A stretch of DNA of 64,000 nucleotides from Entomortierella parvispora E1425 (GCA_020891255.1 BQFW01000007.1:2294001-2358000), one strand, 5' to 3'. Positions 18,828 through 43,337 are shown, counted from the stretch's first letter. Program-made: numbers and translations. The notes: generated from the letters alone by a model not told the origin.

Positions 18828-21427
18828 ATGCCGAGTACCCTTCCCCATCCTATGGCCCCAGCACCCATCCTACCTCAAAAATCTGTAGCCATCATGTCTG
18901 CACACAACCACAACCAGGGCCATCACAGCCAGCACCCTACTCACCCTAACCAACCGAACCAACAGAGTCAGCACCAGCATCACCCCAATGACCATCCTCA
19001 CTCGTACAACCAGCAGCACAACAACCACCAGCAGGTGAAGCATGAGCCAATGGATCTCTCGTTGCCGCAGCAGCTTGACAATGCCCTTCGCATCCACAAC
19101 CAGTATCCATCGCAATATCAGCGCCAGTACCAGCCCATGGAGCATCAGCAGCAACAGCAACAGCAGGGCCATCAACAGCAACAACACCGGGAGCAAGAGC
19201 AACGATCTTACCGTGGTCATCGCCGGTTCAATGGAAACGATGACGAGGATGAGGATGAACTGGAGGACGACGACGATGATCTCGATGAGGAAGAGCTGCA
19301 GTCCTCCAGATTCCACAGCGCCTACAACACTGCCTACAACACGGCGTACAACAGCGCGTACAACAGCTGCGATGAAGGAGACGATGTCAACATGGAGGGT
19401 GTCTCTCTCAAAGAGGAGGACCAGGACATGTCTGAACCCACGTCAGCATCGACTGGCCCATCTCCCTTCTCTTTCCATCCCCCAAGCAACTCGACTCCAT
19501 CTCAGCAGCACCGGCAACATGCCCCCCACCCTCCTATTGCCTCATCGTCCTCATCTGCTTCTTCAACAGCCGCGGCCACGCCTGTTACTTCTCCCTCGAC
19601 CTCCTCCATGAAGAAAACAGGCACCGCTCCCGCTGCTTCTACCACCGCCAATGTGCCAATCAAGCCCCGCCCTCTCCGCCCCATCCTCCCTTCCCGTCCC
19701 ACGAGTCCGCAGCCAATGATCCAGGCACGGTCTGGAGCTTCTACAGCCAACGGCAGCAGCACCGATCCCAACGCGGCCGCGGGCCCACAGAAAACTCTGT
19801 TTGGTAGCACAAGCACCACGAGCGCAAACAACACGACGGGCAAGACGCGTTCGTCAGCGTACAAGATCAACGGTCTCAACATCCTCAACCGCAACAGTCT
19901 TGACAGTCGCACTGCCCTCGAGATGATCCGTCGTCGTCGCGAGAACCACAACCATGTCGAGCGTCGTCGACGAGACACGCTCAACTCGACTATTCTCCAG
20001 ATTGCAGAGATCCTCCCCAACTGCTCTTCGACTGCCAAACTCAATAAGGGAACGATTCTTCGTCTTGCACTGGACCATCTTCGGGTACGTTTTACCCTGT
20101 GCTCTTTGTTGCCTTTCCTTTACAGAGTTCCTTGAACACGATTGCTTATCTGTCCTCTTTTCTTTTGTTCTCATAGACCCTTCATACCGAGAACCATTCT
20201 CTTCGATCTGAGAATGCTGCACTGCGGTTCTTTTATCAGGGTGCTCAGATGCGTCGCAATGGTCCTCCTTCCGCTGCTGCGACAGGCCCAACCATGGGTA
20301 ACAACCCAACACAACCCCCAGCTGCCTTCTTTCCTCCTCCTCCCCCTGCGTCAGTCCCCCATGCCCACGCACAACCAACGTCTGGACCCTCCCCCCATGC
20401 CTCCCGAGGACCCTCTTTCTCGTCTTCATCGTCCTCGTCCACTCCAAGCGGAATGAATACTCCCTCGATCGTGCCAATTTCTGGTCAAGGTCCCTTCTCT
20501 TCAAGTGCTTCTCGACCAGGCTCGGCAGCGAACAGCCCTCCAAGTCAACATTTGCCCCACCCTGCCCACAGTGTCAAGCGATCCATGTCGGCAAGTGGCC
20601 ATCTGCAGCCCATCCTGCCCAAAGGCCAGTCCTCGTCCTTGAGGGTGTCTCCCTCCTCTAGCCCAAGGCAACACCCACATCAGCGCATGCCACCACATGC
20701 AAGCCCAAGTGGCCTGAAGCCTTTCAGCGACGCCATCCGGCTGGGTCCCTCCCCATTATCAAGCCCGTGCTCTTCGCCATCCTTGGGACCATCGGCCTCC
20801 ATGCCATCGTCTATGGCGTCGGCACCTAATGCCCTCCATGCGCTTGCCAGTGCACTCCCCACTGTTCCTGCAAGCCACCAGCACTCGGCTGCGGTTGCTG
20901 CAGCCGCGCAGGCAGCAGCGAGTCGATCTGGCGGTAGCAGCCACGCTGCACGCCACCAAAAGAGTCACAGCGGAGGAAGTAGCTCGGCGGATACCAGCTC
21001 CGCCTCGTCCGTTACCTCTGAAGCTGCCTCTGGCCCTGCCATGTTGCACCACCATCATCACCATCATCACCATCACCATCATCCTCAACAACCACAGCCT
21101 ATACAGGGACACAACCTTCCAATCCACCCACTTGGCGCTAGTCACGGCTCGCACCAAAGTTCAGGAACAAGGCTCCCTTCTCTTGGATCCTTGACAGCGC
21201 CTTCAACACCCCTCACCTCGCCTCGTCAAGGAGCTGGTGGACGCTCTCAAGGAGGCCTCCCATTGCCCCCACCACTGAGTTTGCCTGGACCGGCTGAGGT
21301 CTTTGGAATTCGCCAGAACCCGGCAGCGCCAGGAGGACAACCGCAACAGAATGGCCTTGGCTTGGGCCGCTTGCACCCCCGTGAGAGCTTCAACAATCCC
21401 ACATTACCACCCTTGGCACCTCGCTAG
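18828..21427 (+). CDS. bHLH(-zip) transcription factor, E-box (CACGTG) class, USF/TFE/Cbf1/Rtg3-like
   Basis: RRRRENHNHVERRRRDTLNSTILQIAEILP...KLNKGTILRLALDHLR, then an intron, then TLHTENHSLRSENAALR. Flanks are Q/H/S/P low-complexity, with an AYN(T/S)x4 repeat and poly-His. Confidence 0.9.
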
Positions 21428-21692
21428 GAAAAAGATCGATCTTCCTTCCTTCTTATACCATTTTTTGATTTTTATATTCTTTTCTTTTTTTTTGCATCCT
21501 GCATTCGCATATCTCTTCATTGACACGTATGATCCCAACCATCCAACACTTTATGCCTTTAACCAAATGTACCATCAAAATAAACCAATGTTTTCCCGTT
21601 TACATAGGCCTGTCCTTAGCGAATATTCCGTTCGCACTTTTCTTCGTGATATCAAAAAACGGTACAAAAAGGCCTACAATTACTCAGAGTCC

Positions 21693-21921
21693 AAGCTCGA
21701 TACTTGGCCATTCCCTAACCAGTCAGGTGATTGGGGGATTTCGATGCATTCAGTTTTGCATTTTGCTTAGCCATTACTTAAAGGCTAAGCTCGATGCTTA
21801 GCCATTAACTAACCAGTCAGGTGATTGGGGATTTCGATGCATTCAGTTTTGCATTTTGCTTAGCCATTACTTAAAGGCTAAGCTCGATACTTAGCCATTA
21901 ACTAACCAGTCGGGTGATTGG
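21693..21921. repeat. ~93-94-bp tandem repeat, ~2.4 copies, with internal inverted repeats
   Basis: TAACCAGTCRGGTGATTGGG recurs at 21716, 21810 and 21903. The unit contains GCTTAGCC-N10-GGCTAAGC and GGCTAAGC-N5-RCTTAGCC. Confidence 0.92.
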
Positions 21922-21924
21922 GTT

Positions 21925-23283
21925 TTATTTCATCCTGTCCACAAATATCGTGAATTGGCGCATTAAGTTCTTTTTCTGTGTTCTGAATTTGGTTCTCTTT
22001 CGCTCAAACTTGGCCCGCTCGAGCCTCAGTCTATCTCTTTCCTTGGCCATCTCCTCTTGGGCTATTTGTTTATCCTCCAAGATCTCCATGCGTGCACGCT
22101 GACGCTCATCTGCCATCTCGGCACGGTGCTGCCTTCGTTCCTCTGTCATGTCCTCGTTCAATCGCTGGCGCTTTTCCTCCACCTCTTCCTCCCATTCTTC
22201 CCTTGCCTCCTTCTCTCGCTTGAGCAAGGTATCGATAAACGCAAGCGCCTTCCATTCTGCTTCCTTTGTCATTTCAACGGTTGTTTTAGACCTCGGTGAC
22301 GGTAGCCGATAACGAGTCGTATCCTCAGATTTTTCTAAAACTAAAAGGTGAATAATAATGAACAAAAGGGAACAATCGCGTTGGTAAAGGGTGCAGGCAA
22401 CTTTCTTACCTGCACCATTATTGACAACAGGTTCCTTCTTCAAACTTGTAGAGTCTGTGGCAGCCTTCCTGGACGATCGAGGAGGAGGGAGTTCAAAGAA
22501 CGGCTTGGAGGTGAAGAGCTGGAGCGAGCGATTAATAGGTCTTGGTTCGAAAACACGGTGCAAGAGCTCAAAGGGCGGACAATGCTGTTCCTGCCGATCC
22601 AGGAGTTGACGACTGGGACCAGTGGATGTCATGGCGGTCGCCTCGAGGTATTTCATTCTAACATAGCAAACCAATGATTTGACACGAAGGGGAGTGATGT
22701 TGACGCCTAGCGTGTCTTGAAGCCAGTCTGTCAGTTCTAGATAAAAGTCCTTGAGTCGAAACCCTTCCACAGATGAAGGGTAGTTCAGGCGACTTGACTT
22801 GTCAGGATGGGATATCCATTTGAGAATGGCCATCATCTCACTCGACGTCCAGATATCCGGCTCCCTGTCCATGTGGTTGACCACTGTAAAGTCAAGCTCA
22901 TCATCGTCCGAGAGACCCACATCGTCGTCCTCCTCTGCGACTGTTTTGTTCTGAACTGGAGGCGGCAAGGTGGACGACTGTGTCGATCGCAGTTGTCGAC
23001 TGGATGAACTGAGGGCTTTCTTGTTTTGTGGCCGAAGAACTGGTGTGGTCGTCACGGTAGTAGCTGTCTGACTTTTCTTCATCGGATGGTGGACTGCAAT
23101 GTCGTGTGGGTGAATCGAATAAAATAAATGCGACAACAGAGCGATTAGAACCGTTGAGTTCGGGATGTAATGAGGTTGAATTGGGTACTGTGCCTCTCGT
23201 TGCTGATGTTGCTGATGGTGATGGTAGTCTAGTTGAGTGGGAAGAAACGGAGAGAAGGAAGAGTTCGTGGCCTGTGGAACCAT
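21925..23283 (-). CDS. Myb/SANT-like (trihelix-type) DNA-binding protein with C-terminal coiled coil; start uncertain (23388, 23283 or 23082)
   Basis: WTSSEMMAILKWI...KDFYLELTDWL...VKSLVCYVRMKYLEA...CPPFELLHRVF, followed by an E/R/K-rich coiled coil. GTAAGA..TTTTAG intron at 22409-22341. Confidence 0.6.
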   Translation of the reverse strand: MVPQATNSSFSPFLPTQLDYHHHQQHQQREAQYPIQPHYIPNSTVLIALLSHLFYSIHPHDIAVHHPMKKSQTATTVTTTPVLRPQNKKALSSSSRQLRSTQSSTLPPPVQNKTVAEEDDDVGLSDDDELDFTVVNHMDREPDIWTSSEMMAILKWISHPDKSSRLNYPSSVEGFRLKDFYLELTDWLQDTLGVNITPLRVKSLVCYVRMKYLEATAMTSTGPSRQLLDRQEQHCPPFELLHRVFEPRPINRSLQLFTSKPFFELPPPRSSRKAATDSTSLKKEPVVNNGAGKKVACTLYQRDCSLLFIIIHLLVLEKSEDTTRYRLPSPRSKTTVEMTKEAEWKALAFIDTLLKREKEAREEWEEEVEEKRQRLNEDMTEERRQHRAEMADERQRARMEILEDKQIAQEEMAKERDRLRLERAKFERKRTKFRTQKKNLMRQFTIFVDRMK

Positions 23284-24051
23284 GTGCTCCCGAAGGAAAG
23301 GGACCACTATTGGAGCTCCGACAAGTTTGCCTGTAGTCAATGGGATTCTATGGGTGTGCTCAATGAACCCCTGGTCACCAACATGCATCGGACTGGACAA
23401 AGCCGATGAAGAAAGCAATGATGGGAGAAGAAAGAAAAGGAATGAAAGTCAACTTGATGCAAATAAGCATGAAAGTCTGTTTTCAGGAACAGCTTCGCCC
23501 AAGGGGCTTTTCTGGAGGGATATCAAGTCTATGCCCATTGGTCAATGGAGTTCTGTCGTCATGGAAAAGGATCTCGGAGAAAAGACAGATCAATCTGCCC
23601 TGTGCGAGCCTTTTGCCTCGCCCACATGGTTATTCACCCCGGACGCAATGGAGGGCAGGGCTACTGCAGATTCGATCGGGCAGCCGGCTCTTCTGTCCTG
23701 AATGCCTTCCTGTCAAGTTCTTTGTGTAATATCGGTCATCATTCCTTCCATTCTCTTTATGAGAGAGAGAGACAAAGATCGTTGTGGTTTGCCAATTATA
23801 ACAAGACACAACCATTGCAGACAGGTAACAAAACAACCCCAGACTCGCCCGCACAAAGAGACTGGTATAAAAAGGTTATTTGCCTGTCATAATCCGATTT
23901 CATCTCTTTCTTCGCCATCCACCCCCCGGGACCTTTTTGGCTCCTCATCCTAGGCACTGCTTCACTGCCTACTGGGCCCACTCGCTCGTTCTCTTGTCAA
24001 CTCTTTTGCAAAATCACAAAGACACTTGCCCAAAAAAACACTCCACATCTC

Positions 24052-27000
24052 ATGAGCCACAACAATACCTTCTTCAAATCATCACGCTCGACTCAGGCAA
24101 GACAGGGAGGTCAACCTGGTCCTTCTGGGTCTGGGACCTCAGCCATGGCGACCCCCAGCACGACAAGAACGACTTTGAGACACCAAGAAAGAGGGTACAA
24201 CCCTCAAACAGACAAGGAAAAGGGAAAACATCAGCTTTTGGATTCGAGTGAGGATGACCCTGAAGAAGATGAGCCTCTTGTGGAAACCTCGACTCACATC
24301 GTAGTGGAGCACCATCGCACAGGAACTGTGAAGACCCATGTCTTTTCCTCAAAGGATGGCCGCCCTTCCATGCTCGGGCATGCTATCCCAATGACAAACA
24401 ATAGTAACATAATGTAAAGTCATTTCGCTTTTTTTTTTTTTTTTGGTTTCTTGTTGTGGATATTCTCATGCTGCAGCATACAAATGCAGATGCCTATTTC
24501 AAGAATTAACGTCATTTGTGGCTATCACATATAGCGAGGGCCAGCTGCTGGACAGCAAGATTGAGACTATGAACGACCTTTTCCAGGAATCTCTTCGGGC
24601 AGGAACCAAGGAGTCTTTGAGGGCTGTGAAGGAAGCTCTTCGAGAGAACGAAGACCGTCGATCCTGCCGTCATATGGTACAAGCCACAGAGGCCTTGGAT
24701 GTCCAGATCCGAGAGGAAGTTGTTCCGAAACTGAATTCGATCGCAAAGCTGCTGGAGGACAATATCGCGGGGACTGGACGGGAATCACCTTCATCCGTCA
24801 AGACAACTTCGAGCAGTATGGAACATATGGACACGCGATTGGATGCCAATTGTGCTGGCGGGGAATCGAGCTGCGCAAAGAGTCACCGAGGAGACTGTGG
24901 ACCTTCTGTGGTAGGCACTGGCGCGTCCGGATCTGCTCCCGCAATCAGCGATCCGTTGGTAATGGAAAAGTTGACAAAGATCGAGGACAGGATAGAGACT
25001 ATGTACAAGGTTGTTATTGATGGGGACGTTCCCCCTTTGCCTGTTTTGGGTACCGATGGAAAAGAGGACGCCTCTCCTGTCGCAGTGGATCCCAGCACTT
25101 CAGCCCCCGAGGTGGACCCCGTCATGATAGCCAAGCTGGAGGAAATGCGCCGTGAAATGTTGACATTCCCCGACACGCTTCAACAGACCCACGAAAGGAT
25201 GGGGGAGCTTATTCAAGCCCTGCTCAGCAACCAGCAACCACATTCCGAGAGGAGTGACGCTGACACGGGAAAGACAGCGAGTAACGCAGAGGAGGCAACA
25301 CGTGTACAGGATGAAGAAGCTTGGAGAGAGTATACGCGAAGCATGCACCAAAGTCAGTATGCACTCGTTTTGGACTTGGGCTCAAAACTGGACGCGACGT
25401 CGAAATCCAACAAGTACGCGCTCAAGACCTTCCTTCGTAAGTTCAGCTGCGTGCTTGCTCTCTGTTTGGTACAGATTGGGTCTCCTCTAAAGCGTATCTC
25501 CTTTATCTCCATAGATTTCATGTTGATGACCCACAATCAAGCCAAGGGGATGAATGAAAAGGTGGATAGTGCACTCAAGGAGATGCTGGACCGGCCTCAA
25601 GCTGATCTCCACTTTCGCACAGAGTTCTCAGAGGCCCTGGGTGCCATGCGAGCAGACCTTCAGAGGATCTTGCACGAGCTCCCAACTGCTATCACAGACG
25701 CGCTGGAAAAAATTCGTGAGCAAGAGATGACAGACTCCCGCGCTCAGGACGTGACGCGTCCTTTTGGAGAGCCCACTCCTTCCGTCATCTCTAGTGGGGT
25801 CGATGCCAACTCTTCAGCTCTACAGATTGCTGATCAAGGACAACAATTATTAGAGACCGAGTTGCCAGCATTGCCCGCTGGGCCACTTACTGCTACTGGA
25901 CAAACAGAGCTTTCACGAGAGAGCGTTGTTAACCCTCTGCCTGGATCGTCGAGCGAGACTGATCCAGTGGTGGCTCCTTTGACAACATCTCCGGTAGAGC
26001 ATCTGGTCACAGTTGTGGAAAGTCTTCAAGCCAACATTGTCTCCCTGATGCAAAGGTTCTCTGAGATCCCAGTCTGGATCCACCCAGACCAACCTATAGC
26101 AGCAGTCGAGGAAGCCACCCCTGGCGATAAAACTGAGGTCGAGAGGGAGCTGCCGCCTGTCCCCCCTCGAGAGACACCCATGGAACGTCAAGCACGAATG
26201 CTTCTCAAGGCAGCTGAGGCCGCTGCTGATTCGAAACGTGCAGCAGATTCTGTTACGAGTGATGGAGAGCCTGCAAGCCGATCCATATCTGGAGCCGAGC
26301 CGCCTGTGACCTCCGAAAGCAAGGATGCCGCCAAGGAAACGTCTTCAAAAGAGGAGGTGTTGGAAAGCAAAGGCAAAGAAACTCAAGACGAAGCCTCTAA
26401 CGACACATCACCACCAGCAGCAACACCGGTCCCAAACTTTCTCAAGGAACTAAACGCCATGAGCAAGACCTTGGGCGAACTTGTGGAAGCCGTTGCTTCC
26501 ACCACTTCAAAGCTGGCGGAGGGTCAGTCCGCAGTGCAGCAGGCATTGATGACAGAAATCCAAAAGGTGATGCACACTCTCAAACCACCGGTGACCGAGG
26601 AAGAAAGAGAGAAACTGGCTCAGGAAGAGTTTCAACAAAGGGCGGCTCAGGTCGAAGCAGACGAGAAGAAACGAGTCGAGGACAAGAAGAACGCAGCTCT
26701 TGCAGAGGAGAGAGCAATTGAGGAGGCCAAAAAGAAGAGTATTGCCGAGGAGGCTTCTCAGAAAACGGCGCACGAGAGGACAGAGGCATTGACTCAAATT
26801 GCCCTGGTGCCACAGCTATTCGGCTCTGTCGAGACCATGGGATTCATGGTCGGAGGCAAGGTGGACGACGTTAGAAGCAGGGTAGATGCGATTGGAACGC
26901 AGCTCTCTCTTGGACTCGGCACAACAGAGCAGGCTCTTTTGACGATCCAGCAAAAAGTGAGCGAGATCTCCACCGGCACGACGAACGAGTCTGCTATGAT

Positions 27001-29442
27001 TGCAAGTATCAACCAGCATCTGGCCGTGATCACCGAAGCTACGGGAACTGGTAGCGACCAGTACTTGAAAGAGCAAGTGGCCGAGGCGATCCGAACCGCG
27101 ACTGATGTCTATGAAATCGTGGATGATGTGAAAAAGATTAGCGAGAAGACCTTAGAGAACCAAGAGTTGCTGAAAACAAGGTTTGGAGAGTGGCAACGAC
27201 GACAGGAAGAAGGGTTCGAGAATTTGGGCAAGAGGGGCGAGGACAGCTGGAATGCCTGGAACGCCCTGCATGCACAAAAGATGAGCGGTTTGGACAGTTG
27301 GCATGCTCAACATGAGGAGCACATGCTGGCTCTCGAGAATTGGCATAGACGACATGATCTGAGTTTTCACGGCATCGAGGAATGGCGAAGTCTTCATGAT
27401 CAAGGACTCGCAGAGTGGCAACAAAGGCACGATGAGGCCATCAACTCTTGGCATCAAAAGCAAGATCAGGATTTGGATCGGCTGGAACAGAAGCACGACC
27501 AAGGACTAGAAAGATTGGAGCAGAGGCATTGCTACGGATGTGCTGTTTCCAATAATGGGCCTTTAGGTGAGGCCGCTTCTTATCAACCACCGCCGCCTCT
27601 TTCAGATGCCGTGGAGAATGTCTCCAACGCGGCGAGAGGAATCTCGGTCACCGATTCCACTCTTCGCTCAAGATCACTAGGCGAGACTGGAGATGGACCC
27701 CAGGTTTCTGTTCGGGGTCCGTCGCAAGAGCAGTCAGAAAATAACGGAGAGCGTTGCGACGATTGCTCCAATCCAGGCAGCATCAACCGCCAGTTGCACG
27801 AGTTCCTGCGAGATGCGGTTCCTGGGTACAACGGGGGCTGTCTCTTGTGTGGGAACGCGCCCGAAAACGACGCGTCTGATAGCAAGAGTCAGTGGACATC
27901 GGGGGTGACAGCGACCGAGCCTCGCACCGGATACGTGACACCTGGTGGGACAGGAATATCTTTGGATCCGAATGCTGTCAATAACTCTGGCCGTCTTCCA
28001 AGTCCTGCCGAGAATATCGCTGATACCTATCGAAGTCGAGAGGCAGCTTCGAAGGCGCCGACGACACGCGCACCGTCCCCTGGCGTCCACGGCCCAGGCA
28101 TTCCGCAGGCACTTTATGATATCCTTAGACCGTTTTTCCATCCAGAGGGCGCCGAGATGGTCGATTCTCAGATTTGGACTAATTTACAACTCGAAAACTC
28201 TCGGCTGAAAAGAGACTTTGAGGAGCTCAAAGGCGATCACGATTTGCTATCGACGCAGTCGAGTCAACTCATGGTTTCCTCCATGGAGAAGGATCGACTC
28301 CTTTCTGCCTCATTGGTAGAAAAAGCCCAGTTGGAAGCAGAGCGTGCCGAGAGCAAAGAAGAGCTGAAGCGAGCAAGCGATACGATCGTTCAACTCTACA
28401 GAGGTATGAATTTCATTTTTCATTTTTTTTTTGGACTGGAATCTATTTTTGCAGCATGCACTGTGATCATTCATTCTGAATCTTCATTTGTTTTTCAGAG
28501 GGCCTTGGACTCAAATGTGCCAGGGACGTTGTGGAAGGCCTCCCACCCAAGAGTGCTGGAGAGAGTGGAGACAGCGATGTGGAATCGGTCGGGTCTCTCC
28601 ACACCCCTCGGTACGGTCTCATGAACGAGGCTGCCGATCAACTTCGTCAGACCCTGGACGAGTACAGAGAGCAAGGTATGATCCTTCGTCAAGAAATTCT
28701 TCAGCTTGATCTCGAAAAGCAGCAGTACCTTCAAGAGCAAGCCACTCGTGCGCTGAGTTCAGCCTTCAATGGACGTGGCAGCAGTAGAGGAACCGGTTGT
28801 GCCAGCGCTGCCACATCGAGTGCCAACGACTTCACGGATACGGATGCGGCAGAGGACGAGAATGATGAAGTGATTGAGGTCTATCCTCGATCGAGACAAC
28901 GGCGTTCCCGACCGGTGTCAATGTTGCAGTTGAGGGACGGAGACCCCGCTGCCTCGGCCTCTTCACGCGGTGGTGGTGGTGGCGGCGCGTATGTTGCGTC
29001 GGCCAGTCGTCGCCAGTCTGTCACAGGTGCTTCTCAAGGCGGCCCAGCTGCTGGTGGCCGGCGCTCATCCGACACATTCAATCCTGCAACTTTTACAGCC
29101 AGTGCCAGCAACAGTTCTCGCCCATTGTCGGGATCTGGACCTTCCATGTCGCGAACGCAGCACAAGCGAGCGTCCACGATTCGAAACCGTTCCATGGGCC
29201 CTAGCCGATCATCTCGCCCAAACGTTCCTGAGCCAGCGATGGTGCCTCAGTTGGAGGCAGAGATCCACGTGTGCAGAGATGGGATGGTAGCAGAGACATT
29301 GCTCAAGAGCAAGAACATTTTGACCGAGGAGCAATTTGATAGCATCCAAAGATCAAAAGGTGAAAATGAGAGAGCTGCCGAAGACACTGCCATTTGGTCG
29401 CTCAAATGTGATTTTCAAGTCAGAATGGTCAACCATCCTTAA
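24052..29442 (+). CDS. large uncharacterised coiled-coil protein (about 4 exons)
   Basis: Long open frames joined by introns at ~24414-24534, 25437-25514 and 28404-28498. Contains coiled-coil segments, W/H 11-14-residue repeats and three CxxC motifs. No family recognised. Confidence 0.7.
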
Positions 29443-29730
29443 GATACCCATCTCCTTGAGAAGTAAATCAACCTCCAGAGTGAGAAAGTTGGAATAGATT
29501 CGACAACAAAAACAAACGATCGAGTCCATGGTTGGTGGCAACAATAAACAACATGTCAAGAAAATGCGATTGTTTTATTAGTTGCTTGCTGGATGGGTGA
29601 GTTTGCTAGCAAGTAAGCAGGATATATGTACATTGGTCCACCGATCAAAGGGACCGACGCCGCCTCCTTCAACTCCGAGTCAAGAAGCACGCGGTGTCCA
29701 CAAAAAAAAATTGTTTGAAGTCCTCGACTC

Positions 29731-32700
29731 CTACTCAATAAAAACCATGCACCCTTCGCCGTATTCCTCGAATTCTTCAAGGAGACTGATGCTGCTCCTC
29801 ATCTTCTTTTGAGCGGCAGCCTCAGGAAGCCTATGGCCGCGGTAGTGGTGGAAGCAGCGTTCCTGTTCCTGTTCAGCACGTGTCATGACTGGGAAGTGAT
29901 TGCGATACATCTGTCGATGACTTGGCGATCGAGAGGGTGATGGCGATGTGGACTCCATGTAAGCCGAACGGGCTGGCGACCTAGAGAGGACACTCTCATG
30001 GCCAACCGGAGATGTGGGAGACGTTTGGCGACTGGTAGGACCACTTGCAGCTGCATCCGCCGTCTGTGCAAAGCCGAAATCCGCTCCTGGACTTGCGAAC
30101 TGTCGAGCGTGGGAGTTGAATACAAATGGTTGAGGCAGGGTGACGGGTGTTCCTTGATGTGCGCTCATCCGGGCTACCTTCTGAGTGGAGGGTGTATCGG
30201 GATATCCAAGTTGACTATCAAAGCCATAGTCGGCAATCGAGTTCATGTAGGGTCGACCAAAATCGCGACCACTAATCGAATCCAGCGGAAGAGTGTCGCT
30301 TGTAGTGTCGACAGCAGTAGCTCCAAACTGGTGCGATAGTGGCGAGGTTTCAGGTAGCAGTTGAATGGGCGAGGACGCTGGCATGGGTGTATGGGACTCG
30401 AATGGATTCCGAAGGGTTGACCAAGCAGCTGGGCGAGTTGACGGAGCTGGGGTGTGTGACAGCAGACGTGAGCGCAGGTTGTCGTCATATACAACTGTCT
30501 TCTGCTTCAGAGTTTGAGTCTTGGTCTGTAAGCTGGTCCCGTTCCTCTGGGCTTCTCTCTCCTCTGACAATGCAATATCCAGTTTTCTCTTCAAGCTCAT
30601 CGCTGGTCGGGAAAGCTCTCCATCTCCTTGGCGAGCACTAGACAGATTCATTAGACCACTTCGTAGGAGGGTGCCTTGCGATCTTGCAAATAAGCCGCGT
30701 CCTGCACTAGGCGATTTGACAAGCGCCACTGCATCATCGGATTCTTCTTTGTCAGAGTCACTAGACCCCAGGGACTCATTCTCATGAGCGTAATTTCTTT
30801 CTCGCTCCGATACTGCGGGTACGGGTTCAGGTCCATCTGTGAGAGTACTCATGCTCATCGAAAGGTGAATTTGCACGACAGGTTCTGTTGCTTGTGAGTA
30901 GGCGGCTGATCCGTCTAGAAATCGATCGTCCGGCTGCGTGGCGTCCGTGTCCGCTTGACTTGTAAGATTGTCCGACATGGGCAAACGAAGTTGATTGCTA
31001 AATACTCTCTTTGCAAAGAATCCTGGCACTCTTGCGGGTTCCGAGGCATCCTCGAGGAAAGGATTAACGAGCAAACGGTCCTGGCTCTCCAAGCAAGTCA
31101 TGGAAGGAACGGAAGCAGCCATTGTTGCCATGTCTTTCAGGTCGTCAGCGTCGTCAGCGTCGAGTAAATCGTTTGCGTCGTTTGCGTCGTTTGCGTTGTT
31201 TGCGTTGTTTACAGTGTCTGCATCATTTGTGGTCTCTACATCATGTGCGGCACCTGCATCATTTGCGGCGCTTGTTTCGTTTGTGTGGATTGTCACGTTA
31301 TTGTCGGAGGTGAGGGGAACTTCCTGGGCAACGCCAGACTCTAACGGCTCGTTACGACCTGCAATGTCCGCGTCGTCGCCCTCTGGTGGGGAGCGCGATT
31401 CAGGAACAGCCTCCTTGATTGTCAGACTCGGCTCTTGCATACCGGTAGTCTCCTTAGATGACGGCGCAAGTAGATTCATGCAAGGGTCATTGTTGCCAAG
31501 TTCTACAGCCTCAGCACAATCTCCCTTGATAGCAGTGGATGCAGCAGGGGATATAGCAGCATCGCTGTTGGTAGACTTTTCTAGAGAGGGAACCACAGCA
31601 GGCTGGTCCTTGCTCAAGTCAAGGTCATCCAACTTTGTAGAGGCCGTGACCGTCTTGGGCTGTCGTTTCAAGCGTAACAAAAACTTGTCTAGATGCACAA
31701 ACTTCGAAGCATCGTGGGCGTATATCCGATGGGCTTGAGATGCGATGTGCTAAACAAAGAATTTTTGACAATTAGAGCGAGTTTCGTGTGCTGGTTGAGT
31801 GCTCTACGCAGAAGAAATAACATACCCTATTCATATCCTCAAAAAAGCCTCGGCAGTTCTCACAGTAGCCCTTCTTCCGGTGTTCTGGCGGAACTGCAGG
31901 AGCCAGTGCCTTCAATTGCTCCTGCCTTGCAGGGTCTGGTACAGGTGGTAGTCCAAGTGGAATAGGCACAGTAGCATCGGCGGTGGCGATAACAGTTTTG
32001 GTCTGAGGGACAGCTTGTGGTTGTTGCTCTGTCTTTTGCAATCTAAATTTTGAAGCCCCAGCCTCTAAAAGAACGCCTGCGCTGCCTGGACGAACAATCT
32101 CGGCTGGTCGGGCAAACTCCGCCTTCTTGGAATCTTGGGTTGGCACAGTTGCCACCATGGCCGCAGACACTATGGCGTCCGCCTTGGGTGCAGGCAAAGT
32201 TCTTTTTCCAAGCTGCCGCAAAACCTCATCATGTGCGGCCTCCGGGCCCTGAGCGTGGTGTGCCTTTCCCATGGCAGAGGTAGTAGACACAACATGGGAA
32301 GTAACAGAGTTTACTATCCCAGAAGCGAGGGCAGATGGCGATGGCTGAACATCCTGGGCTTCTGGCACACGCGGAGCCTCACCCGCGGCTGCAGCTGGTT
32401 CTATCCCTTGCCTAGCAGGGACTGCCTGTGCTTCTTGCTTTGGGACTCGGGGCTCGATATGAATGAATGGGCTGCGCTCTGTCATATGAAGTTGGATTTT
32501 TGGCCAGGGGCATTTTACACTCGACGAGGTCTTTTTGGAGTCGTACTCGTGTGCCAGGATGGTTCTGTGACGACCAGTGGTATCCTCGATAAGAACATAT
32601 GGCCCTCTGAAAATGTGGTAGTCTGACCTGACAGAGTCGTCCATCTGTGTTGTAGTGAGACCATAGGTTTTCTCGTGGAGGAGAAGATCCTGCAGCTTAC

Positions 32701-33832: not shown

Positions 33833-34003
33833 CAGAGATGAGTGGGAGTTGAAGCAGATTGAAGCAAAGGGGCAGGAGAATGGATGCCAATGAACCAATG
33901 AATTTAATTCATGGTGGTGATTTTTTGCATGATTGTTTTCTGAGGGAGACGCGACAACACGTGACCATCAGGTTGCGCCACCAATTTTGTATTTTTGACA
34001 TTG
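33833..34003 (+). repeat. 171-bp direct repeat, copy 1
   Basis: CAGAGATGAGTGGGAGTTG...TTTTTGACATTG, identical by eye to 34481-34651. Confidence 0.95.
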
Positions 34004-34248: not shown

Positions 34249-34500
34249 ATGCCCAAGCATCAATTGTCTCAACAGGACCAGGAACCGCCCCAGGAACCCA
34301 AGCAGCAACAACAGCAACAACAGCGGACGCGAAAACGACAGAAACGAGAGCCTCCGACAACTGGCCAGCAACCATGCTCCCAGCAAGTCGATTCATCTCA
34401 ACGTGAATCTAATGTAATGCTCGACTCGACTACGTCAGCTCTACGCATGCTGCGGAATGAACAGTGCCATCTGTGTGCCTCAGAGATGAGTGGGAGTTGA
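34249..34500 (+). pseudogene. possible truncated gene 5' end (83 codons; Q-rich, basic RTRKRQKR cluster)
   Basis: ATG follows a pyrimidine-rich leader and the sequence has a low-complexity, protein-like composition. The frame runs into repeat copy 2 and stops shortly after the junction. Confidence 0.35.
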
Positions 34501-34651
34501 AGCAGATTGAAGCAAAGGGGCAGGAGAATGGATGCCAATGAACCAATGAATTTAATTCATGGTGGTGATTTTTTGCATGATTGTTTTCTGAGGGAGACGC
34601 GACAACACGTGACCATCAGGTTGCGCCACCAATTTTGTATTTTTGACATTG
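34481..34651 (+). repeat. 171-bp direct repeat, copy 2
   Basis: Same sequence as 33833-34003, 648 bp downstream. Confidence 0.95.
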
Positions 34652-35536: not shown

Positions 35537-35842
35537 AGATGGGTTAGAAGGAGTGGATCAACCGGCTGGTGTGGTGCGTGTGATGTGAAAAGGGTGCTAG
35601 AGAAGAGGATGCAGGAGAAAGAAAGAGAAAGAAAGTGGGAGGTGGGGGGGAAAAAGGACGGACGAGAGGCGAGCGAAACAAAAAGGTGGCAAAGGGACCA
35701 CACCCACTGTTCCTTTGACGTCCTGGGACAGCGCCACCATCCATCGGGCGAAAGTGCCGAATAAAACTGAATAAAACTTAGTTTACGGTGTCTTCAGTCA
35801 CAAAAAAACAAGAGTAAACAAATTAAGTACAGATTAGTCTGA

Positions 35843-38800
35843 TTAGACCTCTGACCAAATAATTGTCGGTGTAATTTGCAAGATACTCACGTAAGGTTGC
35901 GGCAAGCGCAATTCGTCCTTGCATCCGGTTGGATGAATTTGGAAGGTAGTTTCTTCGGTCTTTGAGCCGACGTTGGGGAGTGGCTGCGACCAAGGTCGCG
36001 ATGTTCTTGCAAAAGGACGAAGGGTTGTTCTGTCTGATGATGTGAGCTGAGAGTACCCTGATACTGCGATGTTTAAGGCGGCGTTGGCGTCTCGCCCCCG
36101 AATGGTATACCCACATTTGTGGGAAATACATTCCGGGTTGGTGCACTCTACCGCCCCATTGATCCTCACAAGCTTCAAGGTACCCTTCTTCCGACGGCGA
36201 CCTCGGGCAAGTCGTATGAACTGGAAACAAAACGGACAACGCTTGGATGTATTGTTCTCGTTTGTTTTACAAACTGCCCCATGTTGCATGTGACGGTGGG
36301 GGATCTTGTTGCCACCCATTTTTACGTTCCCCTTGAGCCGAGAACCTACACCCATCCCAGCTGCCCCATGGAAATGTAGCGGTATGACGCGACGTAGAGT
36401 CTTTGAGCAGTTCGTTACGTGTTTAAGCACCAGGCGCTCCTTTCCCGTGGGGTCCTTTATGAGTTCCGGCCTGTGATGAGTTTTACAGGAGGGGCAAAAG
36501 CCGTTGGATTGGATGGGCACCTTTTCAGGAATTGGCTCTTCGACTATTGCATTCATGACGGGAATAAAGATCTGGTTAGATAATGGAAGCGTGAAGCTAT
36601 GAACTGCGCCACATTTTTGAATGGTATTGTTTTACCTTGACCAACTCTTTTGAACTCGCGGCGCTCCCTGGATGCAAAGTAGTCGTATGTCCTTCGGAGA
36701 CGTAGCTCAACATTATGACTTGTATTTTTTCTTGCATTTGAAAGCTCAAAGGCACGAACATTGTCCCAGGACTTTCTCCGAACGCCCGCAGCAATCTTGA
36801 GGTCATCCGTGGTGTTTGCTCTGTGAGCAGACTGTTCGCCAAGCTCATCATATATGGCCGCAATATCTTTGCTTCCTTTGACGGCTGTCTTTCTTTGTTT
36901 TGCTTGTCGCGTGAGCCCCGATATGTGCCGGATGTTTCCAGCGGTGGTCTTTTGGGTTTTGGGTATTTTGATTTGCGCAAGAGCCTCCTCCCTGCTGCCA
37001 GCCAGTGCTTTGTCGAACTCAGCCTGATCTGCAGTTGCCTCATCCGAGTCCAGTAATTTTCCAGATAATAAGTGGTATCGATTCTGGAGTTTGATAAGGG
37101 TCCTCTCGGGGACGATAACGGTTTCAAAAAGAACTTTGGCGCCTGGGTCAGTCCCCCCCGGGACCAGTGTAATCTTGCGGCTATTTGTTGCGTTGTTATC
37201 CTCAATTTCTCTCTTGAGTTGACGTATGCATGTTGCCTCGACATAATCCATCGTGCCAGGGCGATTAACAGTCGGAGAGGACGTGTATGAGGATTCTGCT
37301 GAAGGACCCTTGGTGATACCCGTGTCGGATTTGGTGCTTGTGGTAGATCTAGTAGCAGCCTTCTTATCCGACCTTTGTTTCCCCTTTGCACGTGAGGATG
37401 AAGATGTTGGTGCGCCTTTCCTGTCTTTTGAAAACTTATTGAGGGCGTACTTTCCTCCTTTAGGTCCTTGACTTCGGTGTTGAGCGGGAATATTGATGCT
37501 CGTGTTTGTTGGACAAGTTGTCGCTGATCGTCAAAATCCTTGTACAAATTTTGGAGCGAATCCGCAGCCGTTAACTTTGAAGTGCTACCATCCGTGCCCA
37601 TTCCATCCAAGGGGTCGTCGACAAAAGTCGAGCCATTGTGTGCATCTTCAGAGACAGCAGTGTTCTTTAGAGAAGCAAGTGTGTCCCGAAGTTTGTTGGC
37701 AAGGAGTTGCTGTTGGCGCGCTTGCTTCGCCACTAAACGGTTAAGCTGTCGCAGTTAGCTTGACTTTTCCTTCAGAGTCGCATCTACCTTCTGAGCGTTC
37801 GCGCTCGCCGCCTCCGCTGTTATTCCAGACTCGATGAGCTCTTGCTGACGGGTGGGGTGCTTGGTGGTCGCTGACGGCTGGCGATGTTTTTTCTTCTTCT
37901 CGGACCATAGGTCCTGCACCGAATCATCTTTCGTCTTTGAGCCCACGATCTGAATAGTCCGCGAATCCACGTACAGAAGACTAAAATCCACAAACATTGC
38001 AAGGGTTTGTCAGCCAAGAATTCATATCGCAATGTTGCTCAAAATAAACAACTTTTTCTTACCGGTCTTCAAATTGAAGATGATGTTTCTTGCAAATATT
38101 GTGCAGAATCTCCAGATCAAAAAAGGCCCCTATGACCACGCTTTTGTTTTTGTTCGCGACCTTTACGAGAGACACCACCTTGCCAGCATCTCTGTCTCGA
38201 ACATCAAAGTGACCTGGCTCTTGGGCGCAAAGCGTCTCGCAAATCCCGATTGGGGTTAATGGGAGAGGATGGTCCTTCCCGCAGGACGATACAGGCGACA
38301 GACGACGAGTGAAATCGTGGTAGCCAAGAGCCGTCAGGATATTGTTAGCGAGATGGCAAAATGGCCCCAGTATGAAAAGATGCTCCTGGATTTTGCCTTC
38401 CTCGTCCTTTTTAGGAGTGTACGGCCGGAGAAGATTGAGGATGTTGACGGCCACATCGATCTCACTATCGCTATATGACTCTGGTTCGAACAAATGGTCC
38501 CGTACCATTTGGTGCGTTGCCTCTTGATAATCGCCACTTTCGTCCAACATGAGACACGTCACTGCCTCCAAACCACGGAGGTGCTTAGAGGATGGCTCGG
38601 CAGGAGATTCGGGAGGAGTGTTGGATGGTGGATCGGCAACTAAAGTGTTCATATAATATAATCATTAGAGAAACATGTGGGGACCATGACCATCCCATTG
38701 AAAAGAATAACTATTAATACCATACCTTGTTCGAGTATCGGTTCGTCTCCTGTCTGTTCTAACAGGGTGCTTTGTACTTGGGTGACGCCCATGTTTTCAC

Positions 38801-41453
38801 CTTCGTCCTCGGCTACTTCCGCCATGAAACTATCGTCGTCATCGATCATGTCACCCTGGTCAAGAACGTCGATGTCATCCTCAAGGTAAGCCAACTCGAC
38901 AATATCAACATCCTTAGATGAAAGATCTTGAGCTGAATCCTTATTATCGTTCTTTTCACCATTTCTCTTGACCTTGCCAAGGGTAACACTGATCAAATCG
39001 AGAACATTCTTGACCCGGATGAGGCGAGATTGTCTCTGACTCAAATCAGAGGGGTCCCGTAAAACCAGCGTCGAGTTGACCCACTCTGCCATACAGCTAT
39101 CGATAGCTAGATCCAGCTGCATGAATAGTCTCTTGTAAGATCGACGATGAGCCTTCAAAAGCACATGGGGTTTGCTCCGGTTCTCGCCGATTGTTGACTC
39201 CTTCTGCTCAGCGTACTTCTTTTTCTGGTCACGGTAGGTCTGCTCCCCAACCGGGCGGAGGTGAACTCGCAGGAGATTTCGGACCAGCGCTCTTTTTAGG
39301 CTGATGTACATCGTTGACTTCCATATGTTGCTAAAGTTGGTAGCCATGGCGCGAAGATACTCTGGTCTTGATTGTGACATGCCTTTTGGGCATGTGGCTC
39401 TCGCAATGTAATCAGGGTCGTCCTTGCATGTTTCTCTGACTACCGTTGCCAACTCATTCCAAATAGGATGGGCCAGAGGGGTCGGGGGTTGGGGATCGTC
39501 ATAAGATGCTCGCTGACGCTTGGATCCTATCGGCAAGGATGATCCTTCAGCCTCGTCCTCCTGCTCGTCATCTCCATCGCCCTCCTCATCCTGTTCAAGA
39601 TCATTGCTCGCGTCATCGACATGGTCTTCCTTGTCACCGGCGCCTTGCTTCAGCCGCTTGTTCGATGCACGCTTTTCCGGGATGTTGTTGACAAGGCGGG
39701 CCGCGATGTACTGAATGCAATCCTGGGATAACAGGCCGTGCATATCCTTTTCTTCAGCCGTTCGGACAGCATCCTCGTCGCAGATTATTTTCATCTTTCT
39801 TTGAAAATCGTCAGACACTGGAGCGGCACGGATGATAGGGTTCTTTGAAAGACGGGTATCTCGTATTTCGAAGGCATCCGGAAGAATCGTGACGATATTA
39901 AAGTCCTCATGACCGCCTCCCTCTGGATGATAACGACCTTGAATGACCTACAAGCAGTAAGCTGGGTTAAAATCAAGCTTTTCTCTACCAAATGCCTAGT
40001 ATCAAATTCTGTCTCGACCACTAACCTTGAGTTGCGCCATCATCATTGCTGTCTGGATCTCTGCAATATGAGCCGACATTTTCTCCTGTTTGCTATTCAG
40101 CAGATCCTTTATGGTGGATTTGTCATCGCTCGAAAAGTCCTTCCGTAGGACACTGTTTAGTGGGACAGAAACCACGCGGAGTTGTTTTCCAGGGGTCTTC
40201 TCCTTGGTCTCCTTTGTGAGTTTGCCGGATTCGGATCGATGTTTCACGACGGCCTCATCCCAGAGTTGGTCAAAGTGGCTCTCGACAGTTTCGTGGTACA
40301 CTTGGCAGGCCGTCCAATCCTTTCCGGCTTGTCTTTTCATCTTAGCTGAAACGTCAGCCGCTTCCCAGGATCCTATGCTCATGTCGTGGTGGCGTTCTAT
40401 GACGGGCATGGCTTTTTTTAGGACATCTCTGGGTAACTTCCATCGGTCAAGTTGAGCCCTCTTGAGCATGCAGTGCTTTTTTGCCAAGTCCACGGGTTTT
40501 TTGGATTTGAGATGCGCTTCGACCTCTTTTTCACCAGATGACTTCAAAAACAGCAGGCTATTTTGAAGAGAAAACACGTTATTGCATGTCCCCGTGAGGA
40601 AGAAACGTGCTCACTATACCACGTTATTCTCGGAATTACCACTGTCGTCGTAGTTCGGGCAATGCAACCTGCATGTCGACGGTTGCCGGGTATCCTCTGC
40701 TTTCAGATGACTTCTTGGAATCTCTGAAGATGGCAAGATCAGTAGGCAGCGGGCTCTGGATCATGGATGACGGCCTTGGAGGACTTGGCGGAATGGTGGA
40801 GCAAGGTAGAGGCACATACGTTACGATGCCTTCATAGGAGTTGGCCGCATGCAGGATGCCAATGTGGAGACGAGATAGCCCTGCCGGACGGTAAACTTGG
40901 GTTGCGCAACGTGTTGATAATATGACGATTGTTGTCTCGAGGAGATAGGATAGACGGGACAGCAATAGCTTTGTTGTAGGAAGGCGAAAAGACTGTTCTC
41001 CGACCGTAATGCTGAACTTTGATTCAACAGAACCGTTCAACACCTTTGAGATAGTGGAAGCAAGAGATATAGGTCCGTCGTTTCCCTGAACGATAATGCC
41101 GTATACTTTTTGCAGGACCTGCAATGTTAGGTCTATATTCTCGTTTCGAGGCAAGGTCGACGGTTCCTCGGAAACCTTTTCCAGACGATGCAGGAATTCC
41201 AAGTCCGTTGGTTCGCTTTCCAGAACTTTGCGCGCATCTTGTACAATATTGCTGTCATCCTTGAAGCTAATGATGAGCTGTATGGAATGTATTGGTCATT
41301 AGCATTCCATGCATTGCTTGCATTCCATTAATGACTGAAATGAATGAGCAAAAGTACCCGTGTACTAGAGTCCGAGATGTTTATATCATTCATAGTGACA
41401 TCCATGGGGCTTTCATTCAGCCTGGCATCGTAGTTGTCGTTTTCGCTTTGCAT
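35843..41453 (-). pseudogene. giant Fanzor1-type (TnpB-derived) RNA-guided endonuclease gene, 7 exons, ~1,700 codons, with one nonsense codon and one frameshift
   Basis: Exons 41453-41358, 41277-40640, 40557-40026, 39947-38726, 38639-38063, 37980-36636 and 36543-35843; all introns are GT-AG and phase-compatible. RuvC-I GGTDPG (D at 37147-37149), GAAGMGVGSRLKG, RuvC-II TNENNTSK (E at 36257-36259), Zn-finger CPFC...CTNPEC and RuvC-III RDANAALNI (D at 36089-36091). In-frame TAA at 37755-37757; 1-nt deficit near 37451. Confidence 0.88.
35885..36010 (-). ncRNA. candidate omegaRNA scaffold overlapping the Fanzor 3' end
   Basis: Expected position for Fanzor/TnpB guide RNAs. Cluster of stems: GCGACC-tt-GGTCGC, TCGG..CCGA, CATCC-aacc-GGATG, AATTC/GAATT and GCAAG/CTTGC. 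Boundaries unknown. Confidence 0.4.
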
Positions 41454-42184
41454 GATCGAAGTTCTGTGGAGCAGGGTGGCGACAAGACGAATGGCAAAAG
41501 AGGCAAATAGTCCTTGATGCTGTGCGCGTGCATGGCTTTCTGTCAAACGCGATATACAGCAGCGCGTCTCGCCAGATTTTCAACTCACGTGATCTGAACG
41601 GTCGGTTTTGATACAGTGGTAGTTGACCTTTTGATGCAGTAATCGTAGTCAAAAGGCGCTCTTGGAGGTGCCAGCGGCTCCGAGAATTCCTGTCCCAAGC
41701 CCAAGAGTTGGAAGAGACGACCCGGCGACTCTTAAGTCATTCTGTCGAGATCAAGACCACTCTGTTGGTCGCTCGAGCCTGACGCTCGAAATAATTGCGC
41801 ATTTTTTTTTTGTCCTTCCCGGGTTCTCCTGAAGCTTTTCTCGCCTGCTCGTGTGGAACTAGTGTCCGTATAGCAGAAGCAGCAGCGATGAAATGGTAGG
41901 AAAGAAGTATGTGGCGAAGACAACTTTCCCCTATCTCTCGCCCATTGCACCTTTTTATACCAGAGTTGCGGTGGCTTGGAGGCAAATCCACGACAACGGT
42001 GTCGACTCCTTCAAAACTATCACCCGGCACTCACGAAATCCTTTCTTTCCGATACCAAGAAGCTATGATTAGCATCCGCCACTTGGATGATTGCATTGGT
42101 AGCGGAATAGTATAAAAACGAAGAAACAATGAATCAGGTTCCTCAAGACACTTGCCCACGATATCAACGTACACTCCCTCCAAA

Positions 42185-42790
42185 AGGATGCTATAGTCGC
42201 CTATCTTGACCTAGTCGGCAGTTTCTCTCACGACGTAAGTAGATCTTGAAGCAAAACGACATCGTCTTCTCTATACCATACTAACGTGACAGTGTACAGT
42301 ATGCTTAAGGAACAATCGCAGATGTGTTTGAAGCAGTGGAGCGTGGCCGCTGTCAATATGGTGTCGTACCCTTTGGGAACTCAACTGCTAGATCAGTTGT
42401 CCGTACCTTGAACAAGTTCGTAAAATCCAAGGTCAAGATCAGAGCCGAGACGCACCTCCTTGTTCAACACTACCTCCTTTCCAAAAGCAACATTGAGTCT
42501 ATTCGTCGGGTATACTCCTATCCTGTAAGTCAATATATAGGTGCACATCGTATTCCTGTTCATATGGACGACTTACTTCTAGTCACTAACTGTTCTCATA
42601 ATGGCCTTGGTTCAGTGTCAGACTTTCTTGAACAGCCGATTGAAGGGTATTGAGCTTGTTCCCTGTGCTTCAACCTCAGAAGCTGCCCAACTCACATCCA
42701 AGGAAAAGTTTGCTACCGCCATCTGTAATCGCGTCTGTGCCGAGATTTATGGACTAGACGTTCTTCATGCTGACGTTGAGGACTAGCAAT
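42185..42790 (+). pseudogene. degenerate, truncated prephenate dehydratase (PHA2-like)
   Basis: IVAYLDLVGSFSH (canonical VAYLGPxGTFS), DVFEAVERGRCQYGVVPFGNST (ENS changed to GNS), VYSYP, ALVQCQTFL, STSEAAQ and AAIC-like TAICNRVCAEIYGL. In-frame TAA before GTIADVF and TAG after ADVED. No NxTRF motif and no ACT domain. Confidence 0.8.
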
Positions 42791-43337
42791 GTAAGATCGG
42801 CTCTTCGAAACCTGAGTCTTGTAACCAGAGTGTTTTGTGTTTCAAGAGCCAACACAGAACGCTTGCGATCAATATAGACAACACCATTATTTCGGGTGCA
42901 TCGGATGCCCCTGCAGCCAATGCATTTTTTTTATTCTAAGAGCGTTCTTGTTGCGGTATTGGTGTGTCAAGAATACTGAGATCAGTTTTTATTGATCGTG
43001 ATCGAAAAGTTAAGGGCTTTAGATAACCTGCACCGTACATATTCGATGTCGAAACAAGGGCGGCATGAATGCATTTGCTCACATGCGAGTGCGACCATCC
43101 TCCCTTTCTTTCTCTCTTTCTTCATTGCATCTCTGTCTCTCTCTTTCTCCCCCTTCTCGCCCTGCCTCTTGTTCTTTCTACTCTCCTTCGCCAATCTCTT
43201 TTTTTGCTCTTCTTCCCCATTCTTCTAATCCCCTCCTTATGACCGCCTAATTCCGCCGCAAGTACCACAGCAACTTTTCCACAACTCACCAACAGTAGCT
43301 CGTTTGCAACAAAGCTGCCTCCTTCACTGGGATCATC

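Follow-up and report, generated by a model that had tools for sequence, protein, structure and literature searches.

The locus considered here raises the question of whether a series of minus-strand open reading frame fragments in a 64,000-nucleotide (nt) stretch of Entomortierella parvispora E1425 (GCA_020891255.1 BQFW01000007.1:2294001-2358000; the window below) forms a single giant gene, and whether its product belongs to the Fanzor1 nucleases. To our knowledge, no RNA-guided DNA endonucleases other than Fanzors are known from eukaryotes, and the Fanzors studied to date comprise about 450-850 residues. The solved Fz1 proteins have ~600-850 amino acids (aa) (PMC11423790). The reading that we consider likely, with some reservations, is that the window carries a transposon-borne copy of a Fanzor1-type gene from an enlarged Mortierellomycota lineage, this particular copy being in all likelihood a young pseudogene.

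Translation and reading of the splice signals yield eight coding pieces (E1-E8, Table 1) on the minus strand, 41453..35843, joined via six GT-AG introns of 80, 82, 78, 86, 82 and 92 nt, all of which have compatible phases and carry fungal branch-point motifs between GT and AG. The coding pieces sum to 5,066 nt and, together with a 42-nt segment, one missing base and the stop codon, give 5,112 nt; the predicted protein has ~1,689 aa (~1,700 codons). Exon 2 has no in-frame upstream Met, and the frame of exon 6 is supported by its likeness to the homologue P0017 (RQQELIESGIT vs RQQELEKEGMT). The original prediction joined seven pieces into one frame; the exons, the six introns and the total length were reproduced, while the frame itself is broken by a deletion and possibly by an in-frame TAA (see below). 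Moreover, two intron positions, one of them intron 5, are common to the window gene and a distant paralogue (L006), which fits the description of the lineage as eukaryotised. L006 (8465-13870; GCA_020891255.1, BQFW01000004.1) is full-length and colinear, with 30-57% protein identity; its annotation divides it into genes of 314 aa and 1,081 aa, and the reading frame shifts near 13520, within the last exon.

All previously quoted RuvC and zinc-finger motifs, namely GTDPG, GAAGMGVGSRLKG, TNENNTSKRCPFC, CTNPEC and RGRDANAALNI, were found in their places and in the claimed order, and the D-E-D triad is present. The Fanzor/TnpB signature, located in the C-terminal half of the protein, is D-X(125,275)-[TS][TS]-X-X-[C4 zinc finger]-X(5,50)-RD (Bao and Jurka; PMC3627910), and the window gene reads D(37149)-X268-TS-KR-CPFC...CTNPEC-X11-RD, within the spacing of the superfamily (PMC3627910). 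The catalytic Asp, Glu and Asp are conserved family-wide, in particular, the RuvC-I Asp in 13 of the 14 aligned members. The catalytic residues of SpuFz1 are D383, E541 and D606, the last two binding magnesium (PMC10432273); the RuvC-I Asp, matched solely by fold alignment, would be the equivalent of D383. In both Fanzor clades Gly or Pro stands in place of the canonical RuvC-II Glu, with an alternative Glu ~45 residues downstream (PMC10530073). The FxGxAG strand HFHGAAGMG of the window gene, 36 residues upstream of the TNENNTS Glu, resembles this rearranged layout, the canonical position being placed by eye. The Pfam family Cas12f1-like_TNB matches exon 8 with E 9e-4, under the Pfam cut-off.

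The Fanzor1 identity of the gene is supported mostly at the level of predicted structure. A phmmer search with exon 8 against 1.84 billion representative proteins retrieved 343 relatives, including proteins of 1,081-1,823 aa, the named ones all being "hypothetical proteins" of Mortierellomycota. A profile of the relatives' C-terminal halves had a single match in PDB, SpuFz1 (E 0.028), where the family Glu and Asp align with chain residues 935 and 1000, that is, 65 residues apart, the same as the E541-D606 spacing; single-sequence PDB searches with E8 and E7b yielded nothing relevant. The AlphaFold model of the homologue P0007 (802 aa, equivalent to E5-E8; predicted local distance difference test score, pLDDT, 84; predicted template modelling score, pTM, 0.74) was compared with PDB by Foldseek, and the best seven matches are Fanzor1 structures (SpuFz, PpFz, GtFz; best E 4.8e-5), followed by Cas12 variants. 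VIA aligns residues 121-762 of this model with SpuFz residues 134-633 (Z 14.6, 331 residues), so that the C-terminus, as was anticipated, does align with the Fanzor1 RuvC/zinc-finger fold.

A second AlphaFold model, comprising residues 1-860 of the homologue P0029 (pLDDT 72.5), covers the N-terminal part. Its residues 357-860 (end of E3 through E5, including the counterpart of exon 4) align with SpuFz residues 18-277 at VIA Z 10.6 and with PpFz residues 103-379 at Z 9.2, the next unrelated match having Z 6.6; the equivalents of these residues probably belong to the Fanzor core (REC/WED). Hence on the homologue models the WED-REC-RuvC-TNB fold of Fanzor1 is seen, the solved Fz1 structures being the nearest ones, and the Fanzor1-like assignment of the original prediction is supported by these models.

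At least ten homologues of 1,300-1,800 aa from other Mortierellomycota are colinear with the gene from E2/E3 through E8. In tblastn searches of the window the long homologues are colinear from E3 to E8, and the multiple alignment extends to E2, which is aligned with the N-termini of P0029, P0035, P0053, P0167, P0175 and P0178. Among the relatives found here, homologues of such size were met solely in Mortierellomycota. Judging from these alignments, the giant size is real and conserved, and the 5' exons, as had been proposed, are in the same gene, the Fanzor REC/WED part being probably encoded by E3-E6. With ~1,689 aa compared to 633 aa of SPu-1-1p (PMC3627910), the suggested two- to threefold excess over the usual size holds as well. 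The nuclease had been placed in the C-terminal ~500 aa, where the motifs indeed are, while the models point to a core spanning roughly residues 370-1689, swollen by insertions. The inserted parts of this core (~1,300 aa) include acidic loops and a coiled-coil hairpin of ~100 residues; a linker rich in Ser, Thr and Lys and a CCHC zinc module were added as well.

Since part of what seemed an extension is REC/WED-like, the novel N-terminal module is predicted to comprise ~370 aa, consisting of a small alpha/beta domain followed by a helical bundle. The alpha/beta domain shows recurrent weak fold matches to OTU proteases (Foldseek E ~0.5, VIA Z <=5, Atlas template modelling score <0.3). Still, Pfam OTU had no match in 24 family members, and no conserved Cys was found in the alignment; hence we do not call the module an OTU cysteine protease or deubiquitinase, the fold matches being local. 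Pfam searches with all exons and 24 N-terminal homologues produced sub-cut-off matches only, and a PIN/XPG domain was not among them. Two further candidates were rejected: HEPN_Swt1 in exon 3 (E 5e-5, 23.9 bits vs the 27.5 cut-off) is missing in the 23 other members, and the Ku-like clusters suggested for E4 by ESM Atlas features (0.76 vs the lead threshold of 0.9) imply a beta-barrel unfit for an all-helical model. The ESM Atlas feature search with E2 retrieved nothing. The AlphaFold DB contains similar helical regions in uncharacterised proteins (best E 4e-15).

The window copy is, however, broken. The frame changes inside exon 7 at ~37452-37449 (AAGGAGGAAAGTACG). We compared this position with contigs of run X1, which in both flanks do not differ from the window and thus come from the same strain, and of run X3, a relative ~93% identical. 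The break is retained in the X1 contigs, whereas X3 has an additional nucleotide at 37449 or 37451, in two variants that both restore the frame as KEE(Q/R)YALNK; moreover, the closest paralogue reads ...DLRQKKYDHNKYY at the frame-break point. Therefore the frame change near 37450 is a true 1-nt deletion, neither an intron nor an assembly slip. In particular, a spliceosomal intron bridging 37450 was rejected, since just one GT...AG, of 35 nt, falls in a suitable length class, the region aligns with the coding sequence of P0017, and the X3 frame is mended by one base.

The second possible break lies in the 42-nt segment 37787-37746. It contains GT, GCTAAC and AG, so that splicing is conceivable; against this, the other introns are twice as long, and the paralogue L006 lacks an intron there. 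Being read through, the segment gives coiled-coil-like sequence, and both arms of the hairpin then have approximately equal length. X1 and the window do not differ here. The gene may have either six introns and a nonsense codon or seven introns.

The comparison of X3 with the window lists 37 coding differences, of which 23 are synonymous and 14 non-synonymous, with 25 on third codon positions (in the inferred frames). This suggests purifying selection on these frames until recently. Given the 1-nt deletion and the possible nonsense codon, the window copy is probably a young pseudogene. X3 holds at least two variants of the gene, one with a 31-nt deletion (on window 37512-37544), and single-base indels in exon 6 and exon 8 (37918, 36393); the X3 copies may also be decaying. 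The depth of X1 contigs, a rough measure, is ~78 in the flank and reaches 313 at 35901-36100, which suggests further paralogues in X1 sharing the 3' part of the gene.

The mobility of the family is best seen in Mortierella sp. GBAus27b, where nine proteins of 1,545-1,603 aa fall into one 90%-identity cluster. At least five loci (L001-L005), on five contigs and with unrelated neighbours, share a common 7.35-kb unit that is 98% identical. The unit starts with TCTATATAATAAGG, i.e. 5'-TC, and ends with CCCGTGAGCAATCACGGG-CTTTCAG-CTAG, followed by T in four of the four copies with a readable end; the 3' boundary of the element is ...CACGGGCTTTCAGCTAG. It has a 7-bp hairpin with CTAG 11 nt beyond and no target-site duplication, and the base preceding the 5' end is A in two of four copies. 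Helitrons are defined by 5'-TC, a 3' hairpin situated 10-12 nt upstream of the terminal CTRR, A/T insertion and the lack of a target-site duplication, and, by sequence, the ends of the GBAus27b unit appear Helitron1-like. Homologues in five genera (Linnemannia, Actinomortierella and Benniella among them) and L006 have differing neighbour genes. Taken at sequence level, the family is mobile, being carried in multiple copies by a transposon.

Two other features of the unit were observed. About 2 kb of non-coding-looking DNA lies upstream of the gene start within the 7.35-kb repeat, and in L004 an annotated Pif1_2B-domain gene overlaps the left edge of the unit.

Carriage of the window copy has indirect support. 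In Gryganskiella cystojenkinii ~750 bp separate the DUSP gene from exon 1 of the Csf1/BLTP1-like gene, and in the window this interval measures 7.8 kb (35551 and 43338). The giant gene and a broken prephenate-dehydratase copy lie in the additional ~7 kb. Since this fragment lies inside the ~7 kb missing from the Gryganskiella locus, it may have been carried by the same element; no such fragment was found in the other family loci. Its two Pfam PDT matches correspond to profile positions 35-104 and 103-165 and lie in different frames, surrounded by stops; there is no ACT domain, and a diverged N-terminal motif VAYLDLVGSFSHD precedes them. The halt of an X3 flank contig at 35703 was considered as an empty site and withdrawn; 30 loose letters still resemble window 35708-35735.

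Taken together, the reading of the locus as a copy of a mobile, enlarged Fanzor1-type gene implies the following scheme. Fanzor1 is the eukaryotic relative of TnpB, and its proteins grew to 1,300-1,800 aa in a Mortierellomycota lineage. Intact members, like SpuFz1, would take up a guide RNA made from the element's 3' end and cleave matching DNA via the D-E-D RuvC site, and such cutting would aid the persistence or spread of the carrier, whose ends look Helitron-like in Mortierella sp. GBAus27b. The window copy probably evolved under purifying selection until recently, and it now has the 1-nt deletion and possibly the nonsense codon.

Several observations weigh against this scheme. Both splicing and expression of the gene are predicted, the splicing model being derived from splice signals and colinear homologues, and both structure models are those of homologues (P0007 and P0029), not of the window protein. 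The sequence-level link to Fanzors is weak (the Pfam match under the cut-off, the PDB profile E 0.028), so that family membership is carried mainly by fold and motifs. The REC-like match is helical, with 8% identity, and VIA's own note is that this range of Z can reflect a common helical arrangement; for the former reason the REC/WED assignment is rated as probable, not certain. Around the window copy no terminal repeats or Helitron-like ends were found, and no GC-rich hairpin with CTRR; its flanks have no nucleotide similarity to 12 other loci. Decayed copies are seen in the window, at L006 (frameshift in the last exon) and at L009 (stops). As for the guide RNA, Rfam had no match, the RNA fold z-scores of 3' regions compared to shuffles are slight (-1.9 in the window 3' flank, and -2.3), and no hairpin at a conserved 3' position was found across six loci.

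Some of the same observations would fit a domesticated host gene, i.e. an immobile Fanzor-derived nuclease with new N-terminal domains and a cellular role such as DNA repair or genome defence, which we consider unlikely. Consistent with it, in X1 the gene is single-copy over its N-terminal two thirds (depth 75.6 vs 78.2 in the flank), the gene sits between host genes and has host-like introns, two of them in positions common to the paralogue, the X3 differences indicate purifying selection, and transposon ends are missing at the window copy. Still, the homologues of five genera show no synteny, the locus is compact in Gryganskiella, in GBAus27b there are multiple, almost identical copies of a unit whose ends are defined, and one protein cluster numbers 70 members; frame breaks and stops in the window, L006 and L009 fit transposon copies rather than a needed host gene.

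A guide-RNA-free RuvC nuclease, whose helical lobe and N-terminal module would pick the target by protein contacts, possibly with ubiquitin or chromatin via an OTU-like domain, seems to us no better a candidate than domestication, and likewise improbable. It would account for the 3' ends of six loci showing no conserved RNA structure or hairpin, for the large conserved non-nuclease part, and for the weak but recurrent OTU-like fold matches. However, the family keeps, at the fold level, the guide-RNA-binding surfaces of Fanzor1 (REC/WED and RuvC/TNB), the OTU match is weak (Foldseek E ~0.5, VIA Z <=5, no conserved Cys), and Fanzor guide RNAs vary widely in length and sequence (PMC11423790), because of which they would escape the crude scans used. 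The original prediction called the product an RNA-guided nuclease: the Fanzor1 fold and motifs fit such a nuclease, RNA guidance and DNA cleavage by the family would follow from its membership in Fanzors, and the window copy is broken.

The least probable explanation by a wide margin, two adjacent genes misjoined from unrelated E1-E4 and an ordinary-sized Fanzor E5-E8, draws on several database proteins of 700-800 aa starting at the E5 equivalent (P0007, P0065, P0050, P0104), on the L006 annotation dividing the locus into two genes and on the window exons being joined by prediction, but at least nine independent gene models (from Mortierella, Linnemannia, Actinomortierella, Gryganskiella, Dissophora, Benniella and one public-run assembly) join both parts, every intron phase fits, the Fanzor1 REC/WED match in E3-E5 would leave E5-E8 alone as an incomplete core, and the short proteins derive from short contigs or partial models.

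With the locus read as a copy of an enlarged Fanzor1-type gene, the closest known systems are the Fanzor1 proteins themselves (SpuFz1 of Spizellomyces punctatus, PDB 8GKH and 9CEU-9CEZ; PpFz1 of Parasitella parasitica). The giant family resembles them in the WED-REC-RuvC-TNB fold, in the Glu and Asp that fall on SpuFz1 E541 and D606, in the CxxC...CxNPxC zinc finger, and in the fungal host, introns and transposon carriage. An FG-type strand in the place of the canonical RuvC-II Glu, with an alternative Glu ~40 residues on (PMC10530073), may be a further common trait, the position in the window having been placed by eye. Unlike them, it is two to three times longer (1,300-1,800 aa vs ~630-850 aa), has an extra ~370-aa N-terminal module, and has the coiled-coil hairpin and the CCHC zinc module inserted around RuvC-I. 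The identity in structural alignments is 13-19%, the Pfam match is under the cut-off, and the giant family is known here from sequences and models.

Fanzor1 genes of Chlamydomonas reinhardtii (CRe-1, 2, 3 / CrFNuc; PMC3627910, PMC10530073) are also multi-exon, occur in multiple near-identical copies and ride on non-autonomous Helitrons without RepHel (PMC3627910, PMC10530073). The GBAus27b unit resembles these elements in its putative Helitron-type carriage, having 5'-TC, a 3' hairpin and CTAG followed by T. However, the Chlamydomonas elements belong to Helitron2: each end has a hairpin, the terminal repeats are asymmetric, and target-site duplications are frequent, whereas the GBAus27b unit looks Helitron1-like and has no duplication; moreover, the window copy has no such ends, and the giant-family proteins are much larger.

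TnpB (IS200/IS605, IS607) and Cas12 share with the giant family the split RuvC with the TNB zinc finger, and Foldseek and VIA also match Cas12j, Cas12f, Cas12i and Cas12o over the RuvC half of the model. On the route from TnpB to Cas12 the size was likewise gained by enlargement of the helical REC lobe (PMC10432273). In contrast to both, the giant family is eukaryotic and intron-bearing, has what looks like the Fanzor-type rearranged Glu, and has neither a CRISPR array nor TnpA; the TnpB and Cas12 structures match it more poorly than those of Fanzor1.

Table 1. Predicted features of the giant gene and its surroundings (window coordinates)
Feature	Position	Strand	Remarks
Exon 1	41358..41453	-	ATG at 41453; 32 poorly conserved codons; then donor GTACTT, branch GCTAAT, acceptor CAG
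Exon 2	40640..41277	-	N-terminal alpha/beta module, weakly OTU-like; no conserved Cys; no Pfam match
Exon 3	40026..40557	-	Helical bundle and beginning of REC-like region; colinear with homologues
Exon 4	38726..39947	-	Helical REC-like region, acidic disordered loops; tblastn colinearity
Exon 5	38063..38639	-	Best-conserved N-terminal block, 30-48% identity; helical, runs into WED domain
Exon 6	37788..37980	-	WED beta-hairpin, KKKK basic patch; coiled-coil arm begins
42-nt segment	37746..37787	-	In-frame TAA 37757-37755; mini-intron or coding with nonsense codon
Exon 7	36636..37745	-	Coiled-coil hairpin, Ser/Thr/Lys-rich linker, RuvC-I GTDPG, helical insertion; 1-nt deletion ~37452-37449
Exon 8 and stop	35843..36543	-	Coding 36543-35846, stop 35845-35843; CCHC zinc module 36496-36407, RuvC-II, TNB zinc finger, RuvC-III
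GTDPG (RuvC-I)	37155-37141	-	Asp codon 37149-37147
GAAGMGVGSRLKG strand	36367-36329	-	In exon 8
RuvC-II Glu of TNENNTS	36259-36257	-	In exon 8
TNB zinc finger CPFC...CTNPEC	36238-36128	-	
RGRDANAALNI (RuvC-III)	36100-36068	-	Asp codon 36091-36089
Upstream extra DNA	41454..43337		1.9 kb; missing between Gryganskiella DUSP and Csf1-like genes
Broken prephenate-dehydratase copy	~41950-42783	+	Pfam PDT matches 42324-42650 and 42601-42783
3' flank to DUSP gene start	35537..35842		Expected site of element end and guide-RNA 3' part; nothing recognised

Two observations concern the 3' end of the gene. A consensus donor GTGAGT is located 15 codons upstream of the window stop (~35891-35797, minus strand), and in the GBAus27b copy L001 (15184-15260) GTATGT...CACTAAC...ACAG follows directly after the annotated stop. 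The family may have one further 3' intron, where the guide RNA would be expected.

Elsewhere in the window, positions 17556-29734, between the Rab3GAP-catalytic and Dfp1/zf-DBF genes, contain ~12 kb that are extra compared to Gryganskiella (L010). Within this region are an HLH gene (18828-20135) and an open reading frame of 1,393 aa without interruption (24443-28624, plus strand) that had no Pfam or PDB sequence match; at 18-22 kb the GC skew takes strongly negative values. Just downstream of the DUSP gene, 171 nt are repeated exactly and in direct orientation (33833-34003 and 34481-34651, 648 nt apart).

The literature search retrieved no paper describing the giant family and none with both Fanzor and Mortierella. 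The accessible part of the catalogue of Saito et al. includes one ordinary Mortierella Fanzor of 677 aa and lacks the family motif GVGSR[IL], which is weak evidence of absence. We tentatively propose, while leaning somewhat against a bet on all of its parts, that the genes represent an undescribed Cas12-sized Fanzor1 lineage in Mortierellomycota, formed by independent REC growth and the gain of an N-terminal, possibly ubiquitin- or chromatin-related module, and still mobile on Helitron-like elements in some species, e.g. GBAus27b; its intact members would be RNA-guided, with properties unlike those of compact Fanzors. If so, the altered properties could be the guide length, target unwinding or partner proteins.

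The window copy itself is broken, and its chief value is as a pointer to the giant family, which is two to three times the size of studied Fanzors, is conserved throughout a fungal phylum and, to all appearances, continues to spread in at least one species. If members of the family are active, eukaryotic descendants of TnpB would have been enlarged by REC growth and domain accretion, as happened on the way from TnpB to Cas12 in prokaryotes, and intact natural copies would let experimenters probe the added parts.

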